Assembly: GCF_964204645.1 (NCBI RefSeq)
Contig: NC_134034.1
Coordinates: 2,542,072 to 2,606,071 of the forward strand
Direction: 5' to 3'
Source of the DNA: Tubulanus polymorphus
Taxonomy: Eukaryota > Animalia > Nemertea
DNA: 64,000 nucleotides
The notes under the pieces were generated by a model, which saw nothing but the letters and a program-made list of their open reading frames with translations, was not told the DNA's origin and made no database searches. The position numbers and the translations under genes are program-made. The first letter of the stretch is position 1; every line of letters starts with the position of its first letter. Positions 1 through 61,957 of the stretch are shown in pieces.

Positions 1-1590
1 ATAGCAGATTTAACATATTGTCTACACTGAGGTATCCAATAAGTCTCTCAAATTTTGGCAATAGTGGCATCTGTACCCAAATGAGCCACGTTGAAGTGAG
101 CGTCTCGTGTTACCAAATATGCGAATCTGCTTAACTTCGGAATTAACATAGGATATTTACAATCGTAACTAAGAGGTGCGTTTTTCAAACGCCCTCTACA
201 CCTGATTATTCCTTCCTTGTCCAAATATAATTGTAGTTGATTCACTACCGAAAATCGTTTCTTAGACGTACCAGATAACACCCGAATTATATCTTTACAA
301 TATAAATTCTGACAGCTCTTAACCCACAGGATCTTTGCGCGGTCTATCTCGCATGATGATAATTCATCAAAATGCCGTGAACTCGATTTTGTTTTGAGGT
401 TATGTACAAACCGTAATACGTATGCTGTAACCCGCAGAAGTCCTGTGAGGGAAGAATATGTCTCTATATCTACTACCTTCCCAACATCATAGTCAGAAAT
501 AACTTCTGAAACATCAAAGGATACAGCATTAGATTCGACATGGTTGGTGTTTACGTGCATGATATTTCCGTCACACTTACTTACTACAGGACGATTGTTT
601 TCATCGACCAGCCATGGCGGTCCCTTAAACCAGAAGGTGCTACATTGATTAAGTGTTTCACAAGTCACACCACGTGTAATAAGATCTGCAGGGTTTTCTT
701 CAGATGGACAAAAACCCCAACAACCAATATCAATTAAACGATTTATTTCTGACCTTCGATTTTCTACGAATTGGGATACCTTTTTACCCGACCGTCCTGC
801 TAACCACCCTAAAACAATCTGACTATCGGACCAGGCGAAAATATTCAATGGCCGACATAACGCAGGTTCAAGTGACTTTGCAACGTGAGATACAAGACGT
901 GCTCCTATCACTGCAGCGCACAATTCTAATTGAGGAATTGATAATTTCTTAATAGGTGCCACACGAGATTTGGACATCAAAAAGGCGGATTGATCAACGC
1001 AACGGATATATGTTACTGCCCCGAAAGCCCGTGAACTACTGTCACAAAATACGTGAAGTTCTGGTTGGCCGGAAACCAACATGGCAGAATCAATTAGTTG
1101 ACGCGGAAATTCAAATGTAGACGCTTCTCGCATATCTTTTACTACAGAACTCCATCTACTACAAAGTTCGCTGGACAGACTATCGTCCCAATCCACAGAA
1201 AGTTTCCAAATGTCTTGCATTAGAATTTTCGATTGAACTGTAATTGGTGTAAGAAAACCGAACGGATCATAGACACTGGAAATATTACTGAGAATCAAAC
1301 GTTTAGTAATAGGTACTACACTGGAAAGGTTGTCATAAAGCAGTGTAAGACTGTCATGGTTGACATCCCACTTTATACCCAAAACTTTGACACTGTTTGA
1401 CCGTTCCAAAACAGCCTCCCTCCCAGCAGCTTCACGCAGATCTGAGCAAGTCGACGACCAACACCGTAGATTAAAGTTCGCACCCGCAAAAAGAGTGCGA
1501 GAAGCTGAATACAAATCAACACAACCAGAAATGCTGTCGACGCTAGTGACGATATTATCTACATAAAGATCGCGTAGAAGCTGCTGTGAA
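1..1590 (-). mobile_element. BEL/Pao LTR retrotransposon pol fragment (RT C-terminus, RNase H/Peptidase_A17 region, start of integrase Zn-binding domain); 5'-truncated, continues beyond the window edge
   Basis: ORF 48..1634(-) has the RT motif LYVDN, the Pao-type KVLGIKWD, YDPFGFLTP, the RNase H-like ELHVFCDSS..AFGA, SKSRVAP..LSIPQLELCAA, WSDSQIVLGW and NPADLITRG, then H-x4-H of the integrase Zn finger. The frame continues past the TGA at 48-50 as ETYWIPQCRQYVKSA, so the stop is premature. The first ~16 aa of the ORF do not look retroelement-derived. Confidence 0.93.
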
Positions 1591-1789
1591 ATACAACCAT
1601 ATACGCCGAATGATATATTCGCGACACATGCCACATTTCATTTTCCGATGTGATAAAATTCTAACTAACTGCTTTCAGATTAACCCACATCATTAAACCT
1701 CATTTGTCATATTGTCGGCGTATAATTGTAATACAGGGCATCGTCGCAAACGTTCTAGTTAGGTTTTGCAATTTCAAAGCCCCCACGTG

Positions 1790-2460: not shown

Positions 2461-3111
2461 CAACTAGCTTTCGTTGCAGGATCGTTTGGGTATACAGTCT
2501 TGGGAAATTCTACTGAGCGAAACTCCACTCAAACCAACTTTTTTGGTGAAGTCCCCGCTGTCTCCAGAAAAAAAACACAGTTTAATACTTTCCCACGCTT
2601 GCTGAAATATTCCGAATTTTCTACGTCGCGGGTCATCGTTTGAAAAAGAAACCTCAATATAGGATAAGAATATGTACACATATGATTCCGAAATATCTCC
2701 TTATCATCGAAAGATGACCGTTGTAAACTTCCGCACAAAAATTATAAATACTCAATCCACTTTCATTATTTAAACAGATTTTATGTAAATAGCCAGACGT
2801 GTGCCGTTTAATAATTCATATGAAGCGGTATGGCGCGTACGGTAAAACGTAGGTTACGTAGACGTACTTATACTAGCAGCAAGTATTGATCAAGTTCTGT
2901 GAGGAATAAAATGCGTACGCTTTATCACCAGTGTGCGCGTATATAGACACCGACAACCTAGTTGTACTATCAGTACTAGATAGACGGCCTTTCGAACCCA
3001 TTCGAGGAAGAGTTAAAAGGTCTTGATCGATTGTTCATTCATTGCAATCGTATATTTAAAAAAAAATATACGCCTCAGGCGAATAAGAGTGGAGGAATCT
3101 CACTGTGAATC

Positions 3112-6100
3112 ATGGCTAACTCTACGGGTCATCATCGACAAAATGAAAGCCAGGAAATTAAGACGATGCAGCTCTGTGAGTATAACGATACAAACAGTTA
3201 CGCAGACGTGAGTTTTTTGGATATCTCGGGGTCGTTTTCAATCTAACTAACCTTGTGGAAACGTTTTCTTGCGCGAGGCTCGCACGCGGGTGACTCCGAG
3301 CAAAATGTAGCTATCGGTTGCCCGGCCGCGACGTTATGACGTCATGCGGTCATTTAATCTCATTTAAAAAACTTTGCTTGTTATGAATATAGATTTGTTC
3401 CAGAAACAGAACGTATATGTCATGATCTGTTTGAAGAAAACCCACAATATGGAGAAAAGAGTAGTTGACCTTTTTCAAAAACTAAGATAGAGTGACGTTT
3501 AAACTCTATTGTGTTTAATGACGATGATCTTCTTGTAAAGCCAGATCCCGAGCCAGGTCGTCACGGGTGGGCCCTACTTAACAGCTAGAGTTACCCTCCT
3601 CACCCCTGTGTCGCCACAACAGGAGTACGTTTTTTTTTCAATATTCTTATCATAACCATTCAAAACGATAATATCATTCAAATTCATCGATTTTTCGGTC
3701 GTGATTCTATTTTTCAGATTCCGAAGTTGACCGAATTTACAACGATCTGGAAGAGGTAGAATCTTAATTCGGTCGTTAGTCGGGGCGAGGCCCGAAGTAT
3801 ATATATACCTATGCTATTTCGTAATTTTCGGTATTTTTTCATGTGTAGATGGGTTACGCTCGAGCTGACCAACTGAACGTTGAAGACGTGTCAAAATTCG
3901 ATCATTACCACTACTACGGCACGGACGCGATCGACGAGGCCATCGCTAAGTTGAACATAACGTAAGTCCGGCTGTTTTCAGGCCCGTACCGAGGTGGTTC
4001 GGGGGTAGCGATCGACCTAAAATTTTCAAAATAATTTCTAGAAAGTCAATGCTTAAAGATCTAGGTCAAAATCTTTCGAAATTTGGTGACAATGTCCTTT
4101 TATGGAGCGGGGTAAATTCATTTCATTCTAAAATGATTTACGTATTCATTTTATATATATAACGCGGTTTTTTGAAATCGAAGGACATTATTGGCAGTTT
4201 GATGTTCCATTTCATTTAGACGTCGTAGGCCTATTCTTCGCGGATGGAGAGACTATAAATTGGGAGTGTAATTAAACTTTCGATCTCCAGAGGCACTGTA
4301 CGAACAGCCCTGGCTCAACGATATTCGCGCTTAAAAAACAACCATATCTAACTTCTAAGCGAAACTCATTATTCATGGAAAAACCGTGTCAAAGCAAAAT
4401 TCAGGCTACAACTGGTATGAAAACTATGCGTGCGAATGATAAAGAGTGGACCGTTTGTCATGGGCTGGAAACCGGTTTTTAAAAGGCTGCGCAAAGGCGA
4501 TTTATGGGTATATTTGAATCATGACGGATCTCTTTAGATTCTACTACTTCGTTTAGGCACGATTCTTTATGAGCCATTTTCAAAACTAAGAAAGTTATGA
4601 CGCGTCGAGTCAATACTGATAAGCCATTTTCAAAACTGATTTAACCATACGTCCATAAGAACAGTTGCAGTGTGACAGTGGCCCAGTTTAGTGGAGCACA
4701 TGACTAGCACTTAGATCAGAAGTGCGAGTGCCTTGTCGTTAGACAGTTCCCGGTCTCCACGCATGATATCTGAATGGTACGACTAAATGTATCCATGGCC
4801 AATGAATCGAAAAGTCCGCAGTTCTGGGTTTAAAAAAAACACCATCGGTTTCGACGGGTTTTACTCGGGTCTACATTGTTTTTTTGACGATATTCGTCAA
4901 TTCTGATTGGCGATCCATCGTCGTTTCAACGTTGTGTTCAACCAACTGTACTAAAATAGATTGCTACTGATCTAATCACTCTAAGAAACGTCAACGTAGA
5001 AAACCAATGTGCGTCGCAGACACACGATGGCATGCAACCAAGGCTGCTTTTTCACTGATTATCACTAGCGTTTTCTAGCTCAACTACATTTACGTTGAAA
5101 TATATTTCCTAGGTCTGAAAGCTCCGTTTTGGACATCGGCTCCGGACTGGGCGGCACCAGTCGCTATTTGGCGCACAAAACCGGATGTCACGTGACGGCT
5201 GTAGAACTGCAATCGGATTTGAACGACGTGGCACGTGACCTGACGATTCGGTGCGGACTGGCTCCGCGTGTTCGGCACATCTGCGCCAACATCCTCGACG
5301 ACCAACATTTGAATTTAGGTTCGTTGCAAAAGTTTATATTGTCATATATCAAATCGAAGTCGAATCGATTTTACTTAATTCAAGAAAAAACTTTTAAATC
5401 CAACCCAAACGATTTGAATAGCCATTATTTTTCATTTCGATATCATAATTGAGTTTCAATTAATTAATTCTAAATTCTTGTTTTAATATTCTAACTGATT
5501 AGGCATATTTTTCTGTGGCCTCTTACGTTCCTTAAAAGTGTACTGGGCCCATGACGAGATGTAAGTCCAAAATAGACTTAAATCTTAATACTTGTCTTAA
5601 GTTGTTAGATTGGCTATAAGATGCTGTTTGGCTGGTTTTGAATCGAAAGCATGACTGCGCAAATACAGGCCCTGATTTTCGAGTCCACTCTCGATAGAAT
5701 ATACCGACCTGTCTAAGCAGCTACTTTTTGATTATCACGCATTGTATTGACCGTCAAAAAATGTCATTGAATTTCTTTCTGAAGGACAATTCGACTTCGT
5801 GGTGAGCTGGTTGGTATATCTGCACATAGACGACAAGGATAAACTATTCGCTACGTGTTACAAACATTTAAAACCAGCGGGAAAAATGTACGTATAAAAA
5901 TGAAATTTTTTATGAAATCTTTATATTTCTTATTTATTGGTCACTTACCACGGACTTAGAAACGACGGGGCTTGAAACGCGGCGTTAGATCGAAGAATCC
6001 GCCTGTCGACGCGTAGCTACGCTGAGAAACTTCCGATTAGAGTCCGTGGTCTGACATGTCGTACCTGTTGGGCTCTTCCCTGATTGAGGCCTACAATCAT

Positions 6101-9093
6101 CTAGTACTCACAATCACGTGTATTTTACCCATATATAATGATATGTCTCAGGTACATCGAAGATTTTTTCTCACTCGGTCAAATGTCACCGGACGAACTG
6201 AGCGTTTTGGAAACGGCTGTCAGTTGTCACGGTCTACCGTCAATGACCGGGTACCTTACCCATTTGAAAAACAGCGGGTTTTCCGTAGAAGAGGTGAGAG
6301 AGAGAGAGCGTCCGTGCATCGTCTTATCGTATCGTAGTGCGTGTCGACATTTATTTCAGAGGCACGGCTTAGCAGTAGTTTAGTTTCTGATGCCAGGGGT
6401 GAATCCCAAGATTGCTATTGAAGGTCTTGTGACGTAAGCGGATTTTGATGGTTGTAATAAAGGCGCGCAGTGCAACCTCGTTACAACGAACGTTGCGGAG
6501 ACCTCTCGGCATGGAGAGAGGAGTTGTTAAGTTGGGGGAAACTGTTGAAAGAGTAAGTCTGAGTTTTCAGGGCAGCCATCGGAGCAGTATGAAATTAATT
6601 CAATCATTACTTGGGACAAAATTCTATACGTTATATATCAGATGAATCGTTCTATGCGAGTTCGTTGTAACGAGAACCCACTGCATTTTGATTTTAAAGG
6701 GAAAAATTGATACCTTGTTTCTCCGCCTGCTGAGCTTAAGTTGACCCGGCCGCCTATCTACCCTGTAAATTACTTTTATTGCGATCAAGCTAACAATAAC
6801 AGGCACGGTAGCTATATAGAAATGAACTGATTACAGACTTTATTGCATTTGACAAAATGACCCTGCCAACTAGGAGAAACAAGGTATCAGTCTTGTTTAG
6901 CCTAACTAAGGCTTCGCCTTTGAAAATCGTGTGGATTGGTTTAATGCAGAGAATTCCATAAGATTTCGTATGATAAGGCAGAAAGAAGTTAAGAGTCCAT
7001 TCAGAAATAGGCGACTCAAAACAATTCGTGTCCAAGGCTCTCAAGACCCTCTGGATGCCATAACTCGTAAAAGCTTTATCTAACTATGTAGTACTGGTAA
7101 ATGTTAGTGGTTTTTAGTGGCTTTTTTCGACAGAGTTGAAGAGGGTCTAGTTCCACTGTTGAATCAAATTGAACCCACACAACAGTGGGAACCGGATCCT
7201 GGGTCAAATTAAGCCCACACAACTGTTGAACTGGATCCAGAGATGAATTAAACCCACACAACTGAGGAACTAGGTCCAAAGTCAAATCAAACCCACATAA
7301 CAGTGGAGATGGGTCCAGTGTCAAATTAAACCCACACAACTGTGAATCTAAACCCAGATTCAAACCCTTGTCTGGGTCGTCACCCATTCCTTATAGAACT
7401 GAATCCGGAGCCAGACCCAGCACTACGGTAAAGTAGCACGTATAATGAACATATATCGGTTAGTCTTCTAACGCTTGTCATGCTTCTAACAATTTCCATC
7501 AGGTATATAGAAGATTTGTTCTCGCTGGCAGAACTCTCGCCTAACGAAATGGAATTACTAAGAAACGCTATAAGCTGTCGTATGCTGCCTTCTGGCGATG
7601 TTTATCGAGAAACTTTAAAAAAGGCTGGCCTCGAAGTTGTTGAGGTATGATGAAGATTTGGAAACCATCGATGAAATCACACTCTACCCGTGTCGTGTAA
7701 AGTATATAGAAACCCCAACGCTTAGAATGTTCAAATAAAGTCCGAAATGGTTCCTTTGAACTAGGAATTTCTTGGGTATTACTCCGATGTAGTTGATTCA
7801 ACGCTTCGACAATATCCATAGTCATCTTCGCTGTATTCCTTGAGCAAGTAGTTTATTCAACGTTTCGACTTAATCCTGATAGTCATCTTCAGGAATACTG
7901 TATTCCTTGAGCAAGTAGTTCATTCAACGTTTCAACTATATCCTAATAGTCATCATCTGGAATGCTGTATTCTTTGAGTTACTAGTTTATCCAACGTTTC
8001 GACTATTTCAGGAGTACTGTATTCCTTGAGCTCGTAGCTCATTCAACGTTTCAACTATATCCTAATAGTCATCTTCAGGAATACTGTATTCTTTGAGTTA
8101 CTAGTTTATTCAACGTTTCGACTATATCATAATGGTTATCTCCAGGAATACTGTATTCTGACTTTATTTTATCTGGGCGTTGGATTTTCTATAATGCCCT
8201 AGTGAGAAACTACGATGTCGAAGATTTTTTCGAAAACGATTTTCACGTTCGAAAATCAGTTTAACCGACACTCATGGAATCGTACAATATCCTACCAAAA
8301 CTCAATACATCATGATGTTAATCGGGTCGATTGTTATGAACCGCAAATGTTGTCTATGACCTGGCCTTCGAAACAATAGGGTCAGAAAGTATTTCATCAG
8401 AATAGGGTCAGAAAGCATTTCACCAAAATAGAGAAGGAAAGTATGTTATCTCTCTAAAGGTGAAAAAGTATCTCCAAGTTAAACGAGTTTAATAGGTTAT
8501 CATTGGAGTCGAGAACGTTTATCTCCTGTATTGGACTGGCTCGTTAGGAATAGAAAATAAACCAGAATTTCTGTTGCAAAATCAAGCACGTTTCGACTGT
8601 GGTCGGTCTCCTGTACCGATTCCGGATTCTCTTCTGCCGCGTTCGTTCCAACCTGAATGTTCATAAGCTCTACCTATTTCGGAATAGCGTAGATCCTGAT
8701 AGATTTAACCTGATAGAAGCGGCCGCCAGAGTGAGAATTTGATCCGGAATTACCTTCCCTAAAACCTGCCTAACGACTACCTATAATCCCGGCTTTCCAT
8801 TTTATCTGCTACATTCGAATTTCCGCGCTTAAATTACGTCAGAATTTCGCTTTATTGTAAACTTGAACGAAAGTTAATTCGGCGATTCTTTTTTGCAGTG
8901 GTCTGACGTCACCGCAAGTTGGACACATCATTGCCACGAACGCGTCGGTCTGCACAAGGCGAACAAAGAGAAATACGTGCGCACGCACACCCTGACGTCA
9001 TACGCGGCGTTGGATCATTTTTACAACGCCGTCGATAAGTTATTCAGCGGAGGTAACGTTGGTGGCTGTAAAATCGTGGCTACGAAAGTGTAA
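3112..9093 (+). CDS. Class I SAM-dependent methyltransferase (sarcosine/dimethylglycine N-MT / PEAMT / sterol-MT-like fold), ~286 aa, 7 exons with alternative exon 6
   Basis: Exons 3112-3175, 3718-3755, 3849-3961, 5113-5318, 5785-5887, [6152-6293 or 7503-7644], 8899-9093. All introns are GT-AG with consistent phase, total 861 nt, and there is an in-frame TGA just upstream of the ATG. The protein has motif I VLDIGSGLGG, the post-I VTAVE, motif II QFDFVVS and motif III LKPAGKMYIED. Confidence 0.9.
6152..6293 (+). CDS. Methyltransferase alternative exon 6A
   Basis: cag|G TAC ... GAG|gtgag, 142 bp. Encodes YIEDFFSLGQMSPDELSVLETAVSCHGLPSMTGYLTHLKNSGFSVEE. Confidence 0.85.
6468..6683. mobile_element. 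MITE with ~24-bp imperfect TIRs (CAGTG...CACTG termini, Tc1/pogo-like)
   Basis: Left cagtgcaacctcgttacaacgaac matches the reverse complement of the right end (cagtgggttctcgttacaacgaac). No TA TSD is visible. Confidence 0.5.
7150..7345. repeat. ~40-bp minisatellite (gtcaaattaaacccacacaactgtggaactggatcca family)
   Basis: About 5 degenerate units. The same family occurs at 56450-56750, and the unit contains the actgtggaactgg MITE terminus. Confidence 0.8.
7503..7644 (+). CDS. Methyltransferase alternative exon 6B (tandem paralog of 6A)
   Basis: cag|G TAT ... GAG|gtatg, 142 bp, open frame. Encodes YIEDLFSLAELSPNEMELLRNAISCRMLPSGDVYRETLKKAGLEVVE, 23/47 identical to 6A by hand count. Absent from the supplied ORF track. 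Confidence 0.85.
7795..8160 (-). ncRNA. Tandem array (~67-bp unit, 6 units) of minimal type I hammerhead ribozyme motifs, Penelope-type
   Basis: The - strand unit reads UAUUC CUGAAGA U GACUAU-loop-AUAGUC GAAA CG UU^ GAAUA: stem I UAUUC/GAAUA, the CUGANGA and GAAA core, stem II, and a palindromic ACGU in place of stem III. Cores are intact at 7854-7897 and 8040-8083 and mutated in the other units. Confidence 0.72.
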
Positions 9094-10618
9094 ACATTTG
9101 AAACGTATCGACGAAAAATTGTAAATATTGTGTCGCTTCTTATTCATATTACGCTCCATCCTCGCTTGCCAGGGATTGATTGCCGCCCGCCGAGGTTCAC
9201 GCCAGAAAACCCTGGCCGCTGCTGTCAATTACATCGTCCACGATTTCTCGCGCGGACAGGTTCCCGCTCAGCTGCTCAATACATTGACTGGTAGCCGCTG
9301 GAGCGGCAACCTGTTCGCCCAAGCATGAGCGGTGTAAAAGACCAATGAAGGGTTTGCAGTCAGGATTGGTGTTGACGTCTGCTTCGGCGGGAGACGATCA
9401 AAGCAAGCGAGGATGATTTTGGTCGAGAACTATTCTCAAAGTTGTTTTTTTCAAAGACGGTGCAATCAGGTCGGTTAATTGGATATAAACTATATACTAT
9501 AATGAAATTATTTTTTGAAATTAATCACATTATCTCAGGACTCGGGAACCACAATCATGGCTTAAATCTAGTGGTTAAAACAGTCAAAAATTAATTACTC
9601 TCAACTCATGGAGAACCCAGGTGTCGTGATTGTCAACTCGCTGAATTATTTGCTGTACCAATGCAACCGAATAGAAACGAGGTGATGGCTATAGAGACTT
9701 TGCCCCGATATAATGACTACGCAATATTGGGGTCAAAAACAATGATCCACAGAACAGACTCTCGAAGTTTGTAAATCTCCCATTTTCTTTTGTTGTTACG
9801 TGTCCAACACTGGTGGGCAAACAAACTATACGAGGCTGCGTACAAAACAACAACTACGTCACCAGACTTGACTGGTCACCGCCACACCTGACTGCTTGGA
9901 CCTCACTGGCCGCAAATCGATATACGACGTAGTTATGAAATCACGCGTCGCTAGGCCAAGGGGCTGGAGGACGCGAGTTTGTGGAGCGATACCTGACCCC
10001 TGGCAAGCGAGGATGATTCAGAAAATCAGCAAGTGAACTGCCACAACACTGACCAGACAGATTAAACGCGCTGAGTAGCGACTGGTTCGGAAGACGCCTC
10101 TCGTCCAAAGAAATCCCAATGAAACAAACTTGAAAAATAATTTAGCATCCCATGTATTTCATAAACAATCATAATATCACAATTGACAATAGCGTTTAAG
10201 TAAATTTATAATATTATCATTTTAAAAAAAGTGAACAATTTTTATTATTTCTCAAAGATTCAGCAGTATCTACAATTTTTCTATTGAACATCGGAAAAAT
10301 GGACGGATTAACTTCAAATCTAATATTTTTTGAGTTATAGAACGTAAAAACCTCTCTTTAACAAAAGTTTCACGGTCGTTTAACCTAAAGGTCTATTTAC
10401 AAAACTCCTCTTTCACTAAATATTAACAAACTGAAAGGTTTTTCGTTTTTTTAACTAAGATACTCGGCATTAGCAACACGAAAATCGTTACAGCCGCGGC
10501 GAAAAATTCATATTTAGTAATTTTCATAAATTTCGATAATCTCCCGACGAAATGGCTGCAAAGTTAGGTAAAACTGAAAAGACAGCCAAATTTTTTTCAA
10601 AAAGTTTTAAGGATAGAT

Positions 10619-56173: not shown

Positions 56174-59100
56174 TTAGAAGCGTTTATATTTTGGATTCAA
56201 TCGGAATTGTTGAGTTTCGACGAAAGTTTGACAATCTTGTACTTCCAAAACGGCGCCTTCTGACGCGCGAGGGACCCCGAGACATTTTCTGGAAGCAGTA
56301 TGCAGAACTGAACCCTGGAACGTAAAAACAAAATTGTGGTCAATGGATGTGCATAAGGAAGGAAGAGTTTTAGAATAACCCCCTCCCCCTGGTACTGACT
56401 GACTATTCGAGTCAGGACCTAGCAGTTCTTTAGTTGTGAAAAAGTCATATAAACCCAAACAACGTGAAACTGGATCCAGAGTCAAATTAGATCCACACAA
56501 CTGTGGAACTGGATTTAAGAGTCAATTTAAACCCACACGACTGTGGAACTGGATTTAAGAGTCAATTTAAACCCACACTACTGTGAAACTGGATCCAGAG
56601 TCAAATTAGATCCACACAACTGTGGAACTGGATTTAAGAGTCAATTTAAACCCACACGACTGTGGAACTGGATTTAAGAGTCAAATTAAACCCACACAAC
56701 TGTGGAACTGGATTTAAGAGTCAATTTAAACCCGCACAACTGTGGAACTGAAATCTGGTTCATTACTGTAAGTTTATATATTTACCATCCAACTGCGGAT
56801 ATCGTGGAATTTCCAGTGTTCCAGTTTTTCGCCGTAGTTACACTTCATCAGGCGCGGTTTGTGATTGGTCGACGTGTCCAAGTGATGTAAACACAACATC
56901 TTAGCGAGCATCAGCGATAGGTCGGTTTGAAAGTTCCAATCCTGACGAAACAAAAATTTGACGTCGAAAAATTTTCGTTTCATTCAATTACGTAATGAGT
57001 GTGAGGGTTGATTTGATTGACACGTTTAAGCCACGCCCCCGGGCCACGCCTACCTGGTCGGATTCGTTGTTACACTTGCGAAGGATGATGTTCGCGCGTT
57101 TGGTGTAAATCTGTTCGGCCGATGCCAAACACAAGTTTGTCCCGATCAGATTGATCTGCCGATGAAAACAATCATAAGTTAAATACAGTCCGGTTGTTCA
57201 CTATCCACACGCTACCTTCTGCTACCCGTCTCTCCCTTTTATCATCCCCTCCCTCTTCGTTCAGCCCTTCTCTTCTCCATCTCCTTCAGCCTCTCCCTTC
57301 TCTCTCCCTCTCTTCATTTAGCCCCTCTCTCTCCCTCTCCTCTCCTCTCTCACTCTCACTTACCCTCTCTCCCTCTCTTCATTGAGCCCCTCTCTCTCCC
57401 TCTACCTCTCCTCTCTCACTCTCGCTTACCCTCTCTCCCTCTCTTCATTTAGCCCCTCTCTCTCCCTCTACCTCTCCTCTCTCACTCTCGCTTACCCTCT
57501 CTCCCTCTCTTCATTTAGCCCCTCTCTCTCCCTCTACCTCTCCTCTCTCCCTCTCTCGCGTAAACCCTCTCTCCCTCTCTACATTTAGCCCCTCTCTCTC
57601 CCTCTACCTCTCCTCTCTCCCTCTCTCGCGTAAACCCTCTCTCCCTCTCTTCATTTAGCCCCTCTCTCTCCCTCTACCTCTCCTCTCTCACTCTCACTTA
57701 CCCTCTCTCCCTCTCTTCATTTAGCCCCTCTCTCTCCCTCTACCTCTCCTCTCTCACTCTCACTTACCCTCTCTCCCTCTCTTCATTTAGCCCCTCTCTC
57801 GCCCTCTTCCTCTCCTCTCTCACTCTCGCTTACCCTCTCTCCCTCTCTTCATTGAGCCCCTCTCTATCCCTCTACCTCTCCTCTCTCCCTCTCGCTTACC
57901 CTCTCTCCCTCTCTTCATTTAGCCCCTCTCTCTCCCTCTACCTCTCCTCTCTCACTCTCACTTACCCGCTCTCCCTCTCTTCATTGAGCCCCTCTCTATC
58001 CCTCTACCTCTCCTCTCTCCCTCTCGCTTACCCTCTCTCCCTCTCTTCATTTAGCCCCTCTCTCCCTCTACCTCTCCTCTCTCCCTCTCGCTTACCCTCT
58101 CTCCCTCTCTTCATTGAGCCCCTCTCTCTCCCTCTACCTCTCCTCTCTCCCTCTCGCTTACCCTCTCTCCCTCTCTTCATTGAGCCCCTCTCTCTCCCTC
58201 TACCTCTCCTCTCTCCCTCTCTCGCGTAAACCCTCTCTCCCTCTCTTCATTTAGCCCCTCTCTCTCCCTCTACCTCTCCTCTCTCACTCTCACTTACCCT
58301 CTCTCCCTCTCTTCATTTAGCCCCTCTCTCCCTCTACCTCTCCTCTCTCCCTCTCGCTTACCCTCTCTCCCTCTCTTCATTTAGCCCCTCTCTATCCCTC
58401 TACCTCTCCTCTCTCACTCTCACTTACCCTCTCTCCCTCTCTTCATTTAGCCCCTCTCTATCCCTCTACCTCTCCTCTCTCACTCTCACTTACCCTCTCT
58501 CCCTCTCTTCATTTAGCCCCTCTCTCTCCCTCTACCTCTCCTCTCTCCCTCTCACTTACCCTCTCTCCCTCTCTTCATTTAGCCCCTCTCTCTCCCTCTA
58601 CCTCTCCTCTCTCCCTCTCACTTACCCTCTCTCCCTCTCTACATTTAGCCCCTCTCTCTCCCTCTACCTCTCCTCTCTCACTCTCACTTACCCTCTCTCC
58701 CTCTCTACATTTAGCCCCTCTCTCCCTCTACCTCTCCTCTCTCCCTCTCACTTACCCTCTCTCCCTCTCTACATTTAGCCCCTCTCTCTCCCTCTACCTC
58801 TCCTCTCTCCCTCTCGCTTACCCTCTCTCCCTCTCTACATTTAGCCCCTCTCTCTCCCTCTACCTCTCCTCTCTCACTCTCACTTACCCTCTCTCCCTCT
58901 CTACATTTAGCCCCTCTCTATCCCTCTACCTCTCCTCTCTCCCTCTCGCTTACCCTCTCTCCCTCTCTACATTTAGCCCCTCTCTCTCCCTCTACCTCTC
59001 CTCTCTCACTCTCACTTACCCTCTCTCCCTCTCTACATTTAGCCCCTCTCTCTCCCTCTACCTCTCCTCTCTCCCTCTCGCTTACCCTCTCTCCCTCTCT

Positions 59101-61957
59101 ACATTTAGCCCCTCTCTCTCCCTCTACCTCTCCTCTCTCACTCTCACTTACCCTCTCTCCCTCTCTACATTTAGCCCCTCTCTCTCCCTCTACCTCTCCT
59201 CTCTCACTCTCACTTACCCTCTCTCCCTCTCTACATTTAGCCCCTCTCTATCCCTCTACCTCTCCTCTCTCACTCTCACTTACCCTCTCTCCCTCTCTTC
59301 ATTTAGCCCCTCTCTCCCTCTACCTCTCCTCTCTCCCTCTCGCTTACCCTCTCTCCCTCTCTTCATTTAGCCCCTCTCTCTCCCTCTACCTCTCCTCTCT
59401 CACTCTCACTTACCCTCTCTCCCTCTCTTCATTTAGCCCCTCTCTCTCCCTCTACCTCTCCTCTCTCACTCTCACTTACCCTCTCTCCCTCTCTTCATTT
59501 AGCCCCTCTCTCTCCCTCTACCTCTCCTCTCTCACTCTCACTTACCCTCTCTCCCTCTCTACATTGAGCCCCTCTCTATCCCTCTACCTCTCCTCTCTCA
59601 CTCTCACTTACCCTCTCTCCCTCACTACATTTAGCCCCTCTCTATCCCTCTACCTCTCCTCTCTCCCTCTCACTTACCCTCTCTCCCTCTCTACATTTAG
59701 CCCCTCTCTATCCCTCTACCTCTCCTCTCTCACTCTCACTTACCCTCTCTCCCTCTCTACATTTAGCCCCTCTCTATCCCTCTACCTCTCCTCTCTCACT
59801 CTCACTTACCCTCTCTCCCTTTCTACATTTAGCCCCTCTCTATCCCTCTACCTCTCCTCTCTCACTCTCACTTACCCTCTCTCCCTCTCTTCATTGAGCC
59901 CCTCTCTATCCCTCTACCTCTCCTCTCTCACTCTCACTTACCCTCTCTCCCTCTCTTCATTGAGCCCCTCTCTATCCCTCTACCTCTCCTCTCTCCCTCT
60001 CACTTACCCTCTCTCCCTCTCTACATTTAGCCCCTCTCTATCCCTCTACTCTCCTCTCTCACTCTCACTTACCCTCTCTCCCTCTCTTCATTTAGCCCCT
60101 CTCTATCCCTCTACCTCTCCTCTCTCACTCTCACTTACCCTCTCTCCCTCTCTTCATTTAGCCCCTCTCTATCCCTCTACCTCTCCTCTCTCACTCTCAC
60201 TTACCCTCTCTCCCTCTCTACATTTAGCCCCTCTCTATCCCTCTACTCTCCTCTCTCACTCTCACTTACCCTCTCTCCCTCTCTTCATTTAGCCCCTCTC
60301 TATCCCTCTACCTCTCCTCTCTCACTCTCACTTACCCTCTCTCCCTCACTACATTGAGCCCCTCTCTATCCCTCTACCTCTCCTCTCTCACTCTCACTTA
60401 CCCTCTCTCCCTCTCTTCATTGAGCCCCTCTCTATCCCTCTACCTCTCCTCTCTCCCTCTCACTTACCCTCTCTCCCTCTCTACATTTAGCCCCTCTCTC
60501 TCCCTCTACCTCTCCTCTCTCACTCTCACTTACCCTCTTTCCCTCTCTTCATTTAGCCCCTCTCTATCCCTCTACCTCTCCTCTCTCACTCTCACTTACC
60601 CTCTTTCCCTCTCTTCATTTAGCCCCTCTCTCGCCCTCTACCTCTCCTCTCTCACTCTCACTTACCCTCTTTCCCTCTCTTCATTTAGCCCCTCTCTCTC
60701 CCTCTACCTCTCCTCTCTCACTCTCACTTACCCTCTCTCCCTCTCTTCATTTAGCCCCTCTCTATCCCTCTACCTCTCCTCTCTCCCTCTCACTTACCCT
60801 CTCTCCCTCTCTTCATTTAGCCCCTCTCTCTCCCTCTACCTCTCCTCTCTCACTCTCACTTACCCTCTCTCCCTCTCTTCATTTAGCCCCTCTCTATCCC
60901 TCTACCTCTCCTCTCTCCCTCTCACTTACCCTCTCTCCCTCTCTTCATTTAGCCCCTCTCTCTCTCCCTCTACCTCTCCTCTCTCACTCTCACTTACCCT
61001 CTCTCCCTCTCTTCATTTAGCCCCTCTCTCTCCCTCTACCTCTCCTCTCTCACTCTCACTTACCCTCTCTCCCTCTCTACATTTAGCCCCTCTCTATCCC
61101 TCTACCTCTCCTCTCTCACTCTCACTTACCCTCTCTCCCTCTCTTCATTTAGCCCCTCTCTCTCCCTCTACCTCTCCTCTCTCACTCTCACTTACCCTCT
61201 CTCCCTCTCTTCATTTAGCCCCTCTCTCTCCCTCTACCTCTCCTCTCTCACTCTCACTTACCCTCTCTCCCTCTCTACATTGAGCCCCTCTCTATCCCTC
61301 TACCTCTCCTCTCTCACTCTCACTTACCCGCTCTCCCTCTCTTCATTGAGCCCCTCTCTCTCCCTCTACCTCTCCTCTCTCCCTCTCACTTACCCTCTCT
61401 CCCTCTCTACATTGAGCCCCTCTCTCTCCCTCTACCTCTCCTCTCTCACTCTCACTTACCCTCTCTCCCTCTCTTCATTTAGCTCCTCTCTATCCCTCTC
61501 CTCTCCCTCTCTCGCGTATACCCTCTCTTTCTCACTTGCCCCTCTCTCACTTCCTCTCCCTCTCGGTCTTCTATCATCCCCACCCTCCCCTCTCTTACCT
61601 ATGTCACTCCCCTCCCCTTTCCTTCACTCCCTTCTCCCTCCTTGCCTTTCTCTCTCTCTCCCTTTCTTTAATCAGTCCCTCTACTAAACCCCTCCCTATC
61701 CTCCTCTGACAACCGGCGATAAACACGGTAGTTGATAATGAAATACTAACCGGACCGATGGCCATAGTTTTCGGCGGTAGATTACGCGCGGCGGCGAGAC
61801 TGTTCGTTTTATTCGACGGCGTCGTCTGCTCCGGGTAGATATTCGTCAGATACCAACGAAACGATCGACACTTCAGACGTTGACGCAGCGCCACGCGGTC
61901 GCTGATATCCCCGTAATCGACCGACTTCACCGACGGTTTTATCATGAAGTAATACTT
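56174..61957 (-). CDS. GALNT11: Polypeptide N-acetylgalactosaminyltransferase, GALNT11-like; last four exons (end of catalytic domain, linker, ricin-B lectin); 5' part lies beyond the window
   Basis: Exons 61957-61751, 57155-57054, 56941-56786 and 56314-56174, all phase 0 and GT-AG. Motifs: YGDISDRVALRQRLKCRSFRWYLTNIYPE, ricin repeats NLCL..C..QDW and LCL...PRLMKC...W, and KCL...C. PRLMKC is what I recall from GALNT11. The family is certain, the paralog assignment less so. Confidence 0.85.
56450..56750. repeat. 40-bp minisatellite (same family as 7150-7345)
   Basis: Repeated gagtcaatttaaacccacacaactgtggaactggatttaa. Confidence 0.9.
57230..61710. repeat. 66-bp polypyrimidine/polypurine satellite (~4.2 kb core, ~64 units) filling a GALNT11-like intron
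   Basis: Unit ctctctccctctcttcatttagcccctctctctccctctacctctcctctctcactctcacttacc, matching the 22-aa periodicity in the ORF track. Confidence 0.96.

Follow-up and report, generated by a model that had tools for sequence, protein, structure and literature searches.

The single-copy gene LOC141912012 of the nemertean Tubulanus polymorphus probably carries a mutually exclusive pair of exons, here called 6A and 6B, that arose when exon 6 was duplicated in tandem long ago; exactly one of them would enter each mRNA, giving 286-aa enzymes with different substrate-binding segments. The pair represents real but ordinary alternative splicing, with no new kind of mechanism, and RefSeq already has entries for the two isoforms, XP_074659267.1 (isoform X1, with 6B) and XP_074659268.1 (isoform X2, with 6A). 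The expectation in the initial annotation that exon 6B would be missed by standard annotation was thus mistaken. A literature search returned no paper on this gene, and none describing mutually exclusive exons in methyltransferases of this family.

Exon pair and reading frame

The gene encodes a class I SAM methyltransferase of 286 aa. Traits of the class I Rossmann fold include the DIGSGLGG motif, matches to Pfam Methyltransf_11/25 and alternating beta strands and alpha helices in the AlphaFold model, and Foldseek gave a probability of 1.00 to many class I methyltransferases. We mapped exons by tblastn of the RefSeq proteins on the window, the whole 64-kb stretch of DNA that was analysed, and read their boundaries from the sequence (a slash marks an exon boundary):

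3112..3175, plus strand: exon 1, coding part, Met1 to Leu21 plus one base; donor CT/gtgagt
3718..3755, plus strand: exon 2, 38 nt; acceptor tttcag/AT, donor GAG/gtagaa
3849..3961, plus strand: exon 3, 113 nt; family-invariant D52, Y56 and G58, motif FD-HYHYYG
5113..5318, plus strand: exon 4, 206 nt; SAM-binding motif I (DIGSGLGG) to beta3; Pfam Methyltransf_25/11; one copy in the genome
5785..5887, plus strand: exon 5, 103 nt; beta4, LHI motif, LKPAGK; 3' end is the AT of Met175; Pfam Methyltransf_11
6152..6293, plus strand: exon 6A, 142 nt; residues 175/176-222 of RefSeq isoform X2
6294..7502, plus strand: intron between 6A and 6B, 1209 nt, packed with repeats
7503..7644, plus strand: exon 6B, 142 nt; residues 175/176-222 of RefSeq isoform X1
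8899..9093, plus strand: exon 7, coding part, 64 codons and stop; C-terminal helices and beta7

The coordinates, common length, phase, splice sites and protein identity given for the pair in the initial annotation were all recovered on re-reading. Both exons enter in phase 2 and leave in phase 0, and the AT that ends exon 5 forms the split codon Met175 with the first G of either copy. Each has an intact AG acceptor and GT donor as read from the sequence (tctcag/G and GAG/gtgaga for 6A, ccatcag/G and GAG/gtatga for 6B), and just one of the three reading frames is open in each. The two copies share 23 of 47 amino acids (24 of 48 counting the common split Met) and 76 of 142 nucleotides. Nucleotide differences number 17, 15 and 34 at first, second and third codon positions, respectively, so that third positions are saturated. 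When either peptide was searched against the window by tblastn, the sole match was the other copy (E ~1e-11), with the next best at E > 0.2, so that the likeness of 6A and 6B is far above chance level. Searched in six frames, the 268-Mb assembly as a whole yielded 6A and 6B and no third copy, and nucleotide comparison found no likeness extending into the introns. Differences between the two RefSeq isoforms are confined to residues 180-221.

Because 142 is 3n+1, a transcript with both exons or with neither loses the reading frame. With one copy alone, either product is an open frame of 286 aa and matches a RefSeq isoform exactly. By frame reading, joining 6A to 6B brings a stop 14 codons into 6B, and skipping both puts the last exon out of frame, which agrees with the earlier proposal that the exons can be used only one at a time. 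The reading frame would then be the most likely basis of mutual exclusivity, and the stop in the double-exon transcript, lying upstream of the last junction, makes that transcript a probable target of nonsense-mediated decay. We also considered control by RNA structure. An inverted-repeat scan of 5888-8898 for docking or selector complementarity gave transposon-like terminal repeats and chance-level 14-15-nt pairs only, which leaves control by such pairs unsupported, though not disproved.

Selection, age and use of the two copies

Comparison with homologs indicates that both copies have been under long-term purifying selection, as the initial annotation had suggested. Against a segment profile built from 122 homologs with Tubulanus left out, 6B scored 55.0 bits and 6A 50.4 bits. 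In comparison, neutral-drift simulations (n=2000, at 66/141 nucleotide differences) scored -2.4 +/- 3.9 bits with a maximum of 16.3, and 87% of them contained a stop while 13% were stop-free. Between 6A and 6B, dN was 0.46 and dS was saturated. Since synonymous sites are saturated yet both copies still match the family profile, both have been kept by selection. The invariant family columns E178 and Y209 are the same in 6A and 6B, as are D179, E190, L194, L203, P204, S205, L213 and G217 (each found in 45-95% of homologs), and the differences between the copies lie mostly in variable columns. Departures from consensus at well-conserved columns were few: two in 6A (Ser216 for Ala, and Glu221 where 91% of the family have Val or Ile) and one in 6B (Leu218 for Phe). 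Exon 6B is the nearer to the family consensus in 78 of the 122 homologs and 6A in 29.

The duplication arose in the nemertean lineage. Loci in the annelid Owenia fusiformis and the coral Porites have intron positions around exon 6 in common with Tubulanus but a single exon 6, which dates the duplication to a time after nemerteans parted from annelids and cnidarians. Orthologs in Owenia fusiformis, Porites, Acropora and Montipora share ~44-47% identity with the Tubulanus protein over its full length. Coral isoforms vary in length (302, 280 and 250 aa), with no hint of an exon-6 swap as judged by those lengths. A full-length search returned no relative above 47% identity besides the gene itself, and a C-terminal-half query for short fragments of relatives had no match. 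Gene neighbourhoods in bacteria gave no clue to the substrate: the homologs stand alone, next to cox, PhaC, PutA or ADH genes, and none sits in an operon that would be informative.

Exon 6B is used in RNA. A single 779-nt spliced contig from the RNA-derived run X2 joins exons 4, 5, 6B and 7 through three GT..AG joints, passing unbroken from exon 5 into 6B and covering exon 7 from 8897. Two of the junctions predicted in the initial annotation, 5887>7503 and 7644>8899, are present together in this contig. We considered a processed retrocopy as its source and rejected it: the genome assembly has a single copy of exon 4 and of exon 6B, and the joints are missing from the DNA-like run X1. Exon 6A was matched by no contig in runs X2 and X3, with depth zero over 6072-6363 (contigs, from one study). 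Contigs drop rare variants, so this zero depth shows no more than that 6A is minor in the run X2 sample. Neither the joint 6293>7503 (both exons) nor 5887>8899 (neither exon) was among the joints listed, which come from contigs only. Run X4, dated 2015 and presumed to be RNA, yielded nothing beyond a partial match of 38 nt that came from another sequence. Polymorphism was seen in 6B at 7601, where T>A (Val208Asp) occurs in runs X1 and X2. Exon 6A had no differences between the reference and run X1, and its flanking introns on the same contig had 11, a weak signal given that about 2 differences were expected.

These data bear on two alternatives to exclusive use of both exons. One is that 6A is no longer used or never was, that only the 6B enzyme is made and that RefSeq isoform X2 is a model built from homology; indeed, the X2 model could derive from protein alignments rather than RNA. 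The presence of 6B in the sole spliced contig, the lack of any run X2 or X3 contig touching 6A, the greater closeness of 6B to the family consensus and the unusual Glu221 of 6A all fit this account. We nevertheless consider it unlikely: an unused copy with saturated synonymous sites should have lost the family signature, whereas 6A scores far above the simulated maximum, both of its splice sites are intact and, more weakly, it lacks the differences from run X1 seen in the introns around it. The other alternative is that exclusivity is loose, and that transcripts with both exons or neither are made in quantity as an unproductive-splicing switch that sets the enzyme level. Frameshifted transcripts are the usual substrate of such regulation, and we found no RNA structure that would enforce exclusivity. 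This seems very improbable to us, as neither of the joints it calls for is among those listed from contigs and the strong protein-level conservation of both copies suggests that both are translated in frame. Under the preferred reading, a mutually exclusive pair, each mRNA would take 6A or 6B to make a 286-aa enzyme, with isoforms identical outside the exon-6 segment, and 6A would be used in some tissue, stage or condition.

Swapped segment and substrate pocket

The segment encoded by exon 6 starts where beta5 ends, takes in two helices and the LPS loop, and reaches beta6. AlphaFold models of the two isoforms had mean pLDDT of 93.3 (6B form) and 93.1 (6A form) with secondary structure alike, so the predicted fold is confident and identical for both. 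Among solved structures, the best matches to the family profile were phosphoethanolamine N-methyltransferases (PMTs) of the same fold (Plasmodium 3uj6-3ujd and 4mwz, Arabidopsis PMT1/2 5wp4/5wp5, and nematode PMT-1/PMT-2), with Arabidopsis PMT at E 2.5e-39 ahead of Plasmodium PMT (PfPMT) at E 1e-31; in Foldseek, PfPMT was matched with TM-scores of 0.74-0.82. Identity of these PMTs to the Tubulanus protein is only about 22-23%. Successive methylation steps in this methyltransferase superfamily are often divided among paralogs or domains, as in PMT-1/PMT-2 and GSMT/SDMT. In Tubulanus the source of the variation would instead be how a single gene is spliced, with neither paralogs nor tandem domains involved.

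The PMT comparison suggests that the swapped stretch may line the acceptor-substrate pocket. The exon-6 segment corresponds to residues of about 156-203 in PfPMT/PvPMT, and the beta5-beta6 segment of PMTs holds acceptor-binding residues. PfPMT is described as binding phosphobase through Tyr160, Tyr175, Arg179, Tyr181 and Lys247, with a Tyr19/His132 dyad (cited in PMC6705855). The first four of these named residues fall in the exon-6-equivalent stretch. Profile, Foldseek and residue match thus agree with the earlier suggestion of a substrate-cap role, in placing the segment in the substrate-binding part of a PMT/SDMT-like methyltransferase. We note that the residue match to the PfPMT pocket is approximate, with alignment posterior probabilities of ~0.4-0.6 mid-segment. 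In this approximate alignment, the equivalents of PfPMT Tyr175 and Tyr181, at positions 195 and 201, are Glu and His in 6A but Arg and Arg in 6B, and the equivalent of Arg179 is Ser in both exons and Tyr, Phe or Gln across the family. In the LH(I/L) motif that follows beta4 the His is retained, H154 being the counterpart of PfPMT His132; the aligned stretch does not take in Tyr19 or Lys247. By the same approximate alignment, the full PMT set of phosphobase residues and dyad is not matched by the Tubulanus protein, and the lack of an Arg179 equivalent in the family consensus means that phosphoethanolamine is not an established substrate.

The protein also has matches to sarcosine/dimethylglycine N-methyltransferase (SDMT). 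Isoform X1 is called 'SDMT-like' in RefSeq, NCBIfam places NF041675 first, and Galdieria 2o57 is the top Foldseek match (E 1.6e-20). By profile, however, 2o57 is weaker than the PMTs (7e-22 vs 2.5e-39). Assignment as an SDMT equivalog was rejected, the NF041675 score being 69.3 bits against a curated cut-off of 550.

The exon swap could alter acceptor-substrate binding, with 6B placing Arg at two pocket-equivalent positions where the approximate alignment gives 6A Glu and His. It is plausible that the isoforms differ in substrate or methylation-step specificity. The specific proposal that one gene makes two enzymes, acting on two substrates or at early versus late N-methylation steps, with a more cationic pocket in 6B and a more acidic or neutral one in 6A, is possible but rather doubtful. 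It has to be weighed against a reading in which both exons are used exclusively but the swap leaves substrate and step unchanged and tunes stability, kinetics, oligomerisation or regulation, or simply permits splicing of equivalent enzymes to be controlled by tissue, a possibility to which we give some tentative weight. The sharing of well-conserved columns by 6A and 6B, with differences mostly at freely varying ones, is consistent with an unchanged substrate, as are the equal fold and confidence predicted for both isoforms and the uncertain mapping of differing residues onto the PfPMT pocket. Against an unchanged substrate, the corresponding part of PfPMT contains four of its named phosphobase-binding residues, the substitutions at 195 and 201 are non-conservative changes of charge at approximate pocket equivalents, and the long retention of two copies suggests that their roles are not interchangeable.

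Comparison with known exon pairs

Animals commonly have tandem-duplicated exon pairs that are incompatible in frame. Among enzymes, exons 9/10 of pyruvate kinase PKM and exons 3A/3C of ketohexokinase KHK are mutually exclusive exons that arose by tandem exon duplication. The Tubulanus pair resembles them in that its exons are homologous neighbours with matching phase and a shared length that is not a multiple of three, and in that the swap would replace a predicted ligand-binding segment and leave the remainder of the enzyme unchanged; here too the duplication is old and both copies are conserved. With 6A or 6B alone, and with both or neither, the out-of-frame products are those that hold both or neither. 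The general class has been reviewed (PMC9013439, PMC9741552). Unlike PKM and KHK, the Tubulanus pair is an event of the nemertean lineage, it lies in a small-molecule methyltransferase and only 6B was seen in RNA here.

If both forms are made, the pair would be a natural cassette swap limited to the acceptor-binding segment of an otherwise unchanged methyltransferase, and a clean paired system for studying which residues determine specificity for substrate or step across the PMT/SDMT-like family, which has animal and marine-bacterial members. It would also bring a nemertean case into the catalogue of mutually exclusive exons that tune enzymes, so far drawn mostly from vertebrates and insects.

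The intron between 6A and 6B has features of its own. It contains two elements with terminal inverted repeats, at 6467-6684 and 6703-6894, and a 39-nt tandem array at 7164-7344, and read depth rises into the thousands over its repeat stretches.

Twin copies of exon 6 and their annotation

A search with exon 4 of the methyltransferase gene LOC141912012 found a public protein of 286 aa whose sequence matches the window's exons exactly, XP_074659268.1, named "uncharacterized protein LOC141912012 isoform X2" from the nemertean Tubulanus polymorphus. The second member of its 90% cluster is XP_074659267.1, [quoted passage not shown]. The two proteins differ only within residues 180–221, with RefSeq isoform X1 carrying exon copy 6B and isoform X2 carrying copy 6A. 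Public annotation thus already treats 6A and 6B as alternatives; the expectation of the initial annotation that 6B would be missed was wrong. The gene was single-copy in a genome search, and its coding exons sum to 861 nt, counting one exon 6:

Coding exon 1: 3112–3175
Coding exon 2: 3718–3755
Coding exon 3: 3849–3961
Coding exon 4: 5113–5318
Coding exon 5: 5785–5887
Coding exon 6, either copy 6A: 6152–6293 (142 nt; cag|G acceptor, GAG|gt donor)
or copy 6B: 7503–7644 (142 nt; cag|G acceptor, GAG|gt donor)
Coding exon 7: 8899–9093

Both copies enter in phase 2 (exon 5 supplies AT and the copy G, which together encode Met175) and leave in phase 0, and each has only one open frame, the phase-2 one. 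They share 23/47 residues and 76/142 bases; re-reading the sequence bore out the lengths, phases, splice sites and identity first described. Differences at codon positions 1, 2 and 3 number 17, 15 and 34, so third positions are essentially saturated. Within the window, the sole match to either peptide was the other copy (E about 1e-11; next best >0.2), and across the whole 268-Mb assembly the peptides matched these two places only; the resemblance is not chance. Tandem exon pairs of this type are a well-known class, and tandemly duplicated exons occur in about 10% of animal genes according to a 2002 survey as quoted in PMC9013439. 6A and 6B are of value mainly as a natural experiment on what determines specificity in a methyltransferase family that is still uncharacterised.

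Similarity between the copies ends at the exon borders, indicating an old duplication. Orthologs in Owenia fusiformis and Porites harrisoni are about 47% identical overall and share the intron positions around exon 6; in both species exon 6 is single, with no further copy in the introns, and searches turned up no closer relative. The identity between 6A and 6B just exceeds the best match of either to any homolog (22/46), and family members with 49% identity in this fast-evolving segment are about 60–70% identical in the rest of the protein. Together, these comparisons place the duplication after the nemertean–annelid split, yet make it old.

Selection, expression and probable exclusive use

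The copies are a genuine tandem exon pair maintained by selection, as initially proposed. Against an exon-6 column profile of 122 homologs, with Tubulanus left out, 6B scored 55.0 bits and 6A 50.4 bits, whereas 2000 simulated copies drifted neutrally to the observed 66/141 differences scored -2.4 +/- 3.9 bits (maximum 16.3), and only 13% of them were stop-free. Between the copies, dN was 0.46 and dS was saturated. Family-invariant E178 and Y209 are identical in both, as are D179, E190, L194, L203, P204, S205, L213 and G217 (45–95% of homologs). Differences fall mostly in variable family columns; departures from well-conserved columns are Ser216 and Glu221 in 6A and Leu218 in 6B. Polymorphism adds little on selection: 6B has one nonsynonymous difference (7601 T>A, Val208Asp, towards a family-typical acidic residue), 6A has none, and the constitutive exons have three synonymous differences.

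Reads over the locus come from one study. In sequencing run X1, coverage is even across exons and introns, as for DNA. Run X2 gave a 779-nt contig (depth 78) with joints between exons 4 and 5, from 5887 to 7503 and from 7644 to 8899, the last two being predicted junctions; all joints are GT..AG, and there is no break between exon 5 and 6B. A retrocopy as its source is ruled out, since a genome search found none in the assembly and the joints are absent from run X1; the contig is therefore mRNA-derived, and exon 6B is used in RNA. Runs X2 and X3 had no contig over 6072–6363, around 6A. As contigs lose rare variants, this limits 6A to a minor form at most in that sample, and its conservation suggests that it is used.

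By frame, only one copy is usable per mRNA, as had been claimed. A transcript with both would meet a stop 14 codons inside 6B, far enough ahead of the final junction to be a likely nonsense-mediated decay target; with neither copy, exon 7 is read out of frame. Steric exclusion is ruled out by the 1209-nt intron between the copies, the introns flanking both are GT-AG, and a scan for complementary sequences found no convincing docking/selector match. The simplest mechanism would thus be frame incompatibility, with both-in and both-out messages out of frame.

The swapped segment and known methyltransferases

AlphaFold models of the two forms have the same secondary structure (mean pLDDT 93.3 with 6B, 93.1 with 6A), with exon 6 encoding:

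End of beta5: to residue 182
First helix: residues 188–197
Loop with conserved LPS: between the two helices
Second helix: residues 206–215
Start of beta6: residues 218–225

A family profile built from homologs matched solved phosphoethanolamine N-methyltransferases (PMTs) best (Arabidopsis 2.5e-39, Plasmodium 1e-31) and Galdieria sarcosine/dimethylglycine N-methyltransferase (SDMT) more weakly (7e-22). Top Foldseek matches were SDMT, TleD and PMTs, with TM-scores to Plasmodium PMT (PfPMT) of 0.74–0.82. Assignment as an SDMT equivalog was rejected, as the protein scored 69 bits where the cut-off is 550. Ortholog names conflict among sources (PMT-like, GSDMT-like, uncharacterized), and gene neighbourhoods of bacterial homologs gave no substrate hint.

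The alignment is firmly anchored at the start by IEDF, paired with ITDY, and at the end by invariant Tyr209, paired with PfPMT Tyr189; between these anchors the segment corresponds to PfPMT residues about 156–203. Tyr160, Tyr175, Arg179 and Tyr181, named in PMC6705855 as phosphobase-binding, lie inside this stretch. The proposed "substrate cap" is thereby supported at the level of the segment; residue equivalents are approximate (alignment posteriors 0.4–0.6), and by them the Tubulanus protein lacks the Arg179 equivalent. It is plausible that the swap changes acceptor binding.

Approximate equivalents of PfPMT phosphobase-binding residues
Tyr160: Tubulanus 180; Phe in 6A, Leu in 6B
Tyr175: Tubulanus 195; Glu in 6A, Arg in 6B
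Arg179: Tubulanus 199; Ser in 6A, Ser in 6B
Tyr181: Tubulanus 201; His in 6A, Arg in 6B

Repeats and related proteins

The 6A–6B intron holds two short elements (6467–6684 and 6703–6894) with 22–25-nt terminal inverted repeats, 84–91% complementary, which look like MITE-type transposon insertions. Read depth is very high over 6656–6947, and a high-depth GT..AG joint in run X2 (6491>6585) is probably from copies expressed elsewhere. The same intron (7164–7344) and 56443–56750, about 49 kb apart, share a 39/40-nt tandem unit with core AAACCCACACAACTGTGGAACTGGATCC; depth in the thousands indicates a genome-wide minisatellite family. The intron that separates 6B from exon 7 has a tandem array (7795–8160) of a 67-nt unit with 119-nt higher-order structure, which has depth in the tens of thousands and is thus a dispersed high-copy repeat; an Rfam scan of 3000–9600 (E<=0.1) found no hammerhead or other credible family there. 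Upstream of the gene, a 528-aa open frame (48–1634, minus strand) matches the Pao retrotransposon peptidase domain (PF05380) at E 6e-49 and is a BEL/Pao LTR-retrotransposon pol fragment. A 4.2-kb CT-rich satellite (57300–61513), made of about 64 copies of a 66-nt unit with 95% matches, accounts for the extreme GC and AT skew there.

Run X4 (2015, same species label) gave a 731-nt contig whose match to exon 4 is confined to 38 nt (5219–5256, 90–95%), beyond which the sequences part. The contig seems to code for a related methyltransferase with ...TAVELQ..., either of a different organism or of a relative under the wrong label; if recovered, it could prove the nearest relative of LOC141912012. 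The exon-4 search also returned P0002, a protist-like 942-aa protein from outside the window with a signal peptide and C-terminal RDEL. An N-terminal carboxyl-methyltransferase-like stretch, recognised by eye only, precedes two tandem methyltransferase domains of the LOC141912012 type, another way than 6A/6B to pair two versions of one fold.
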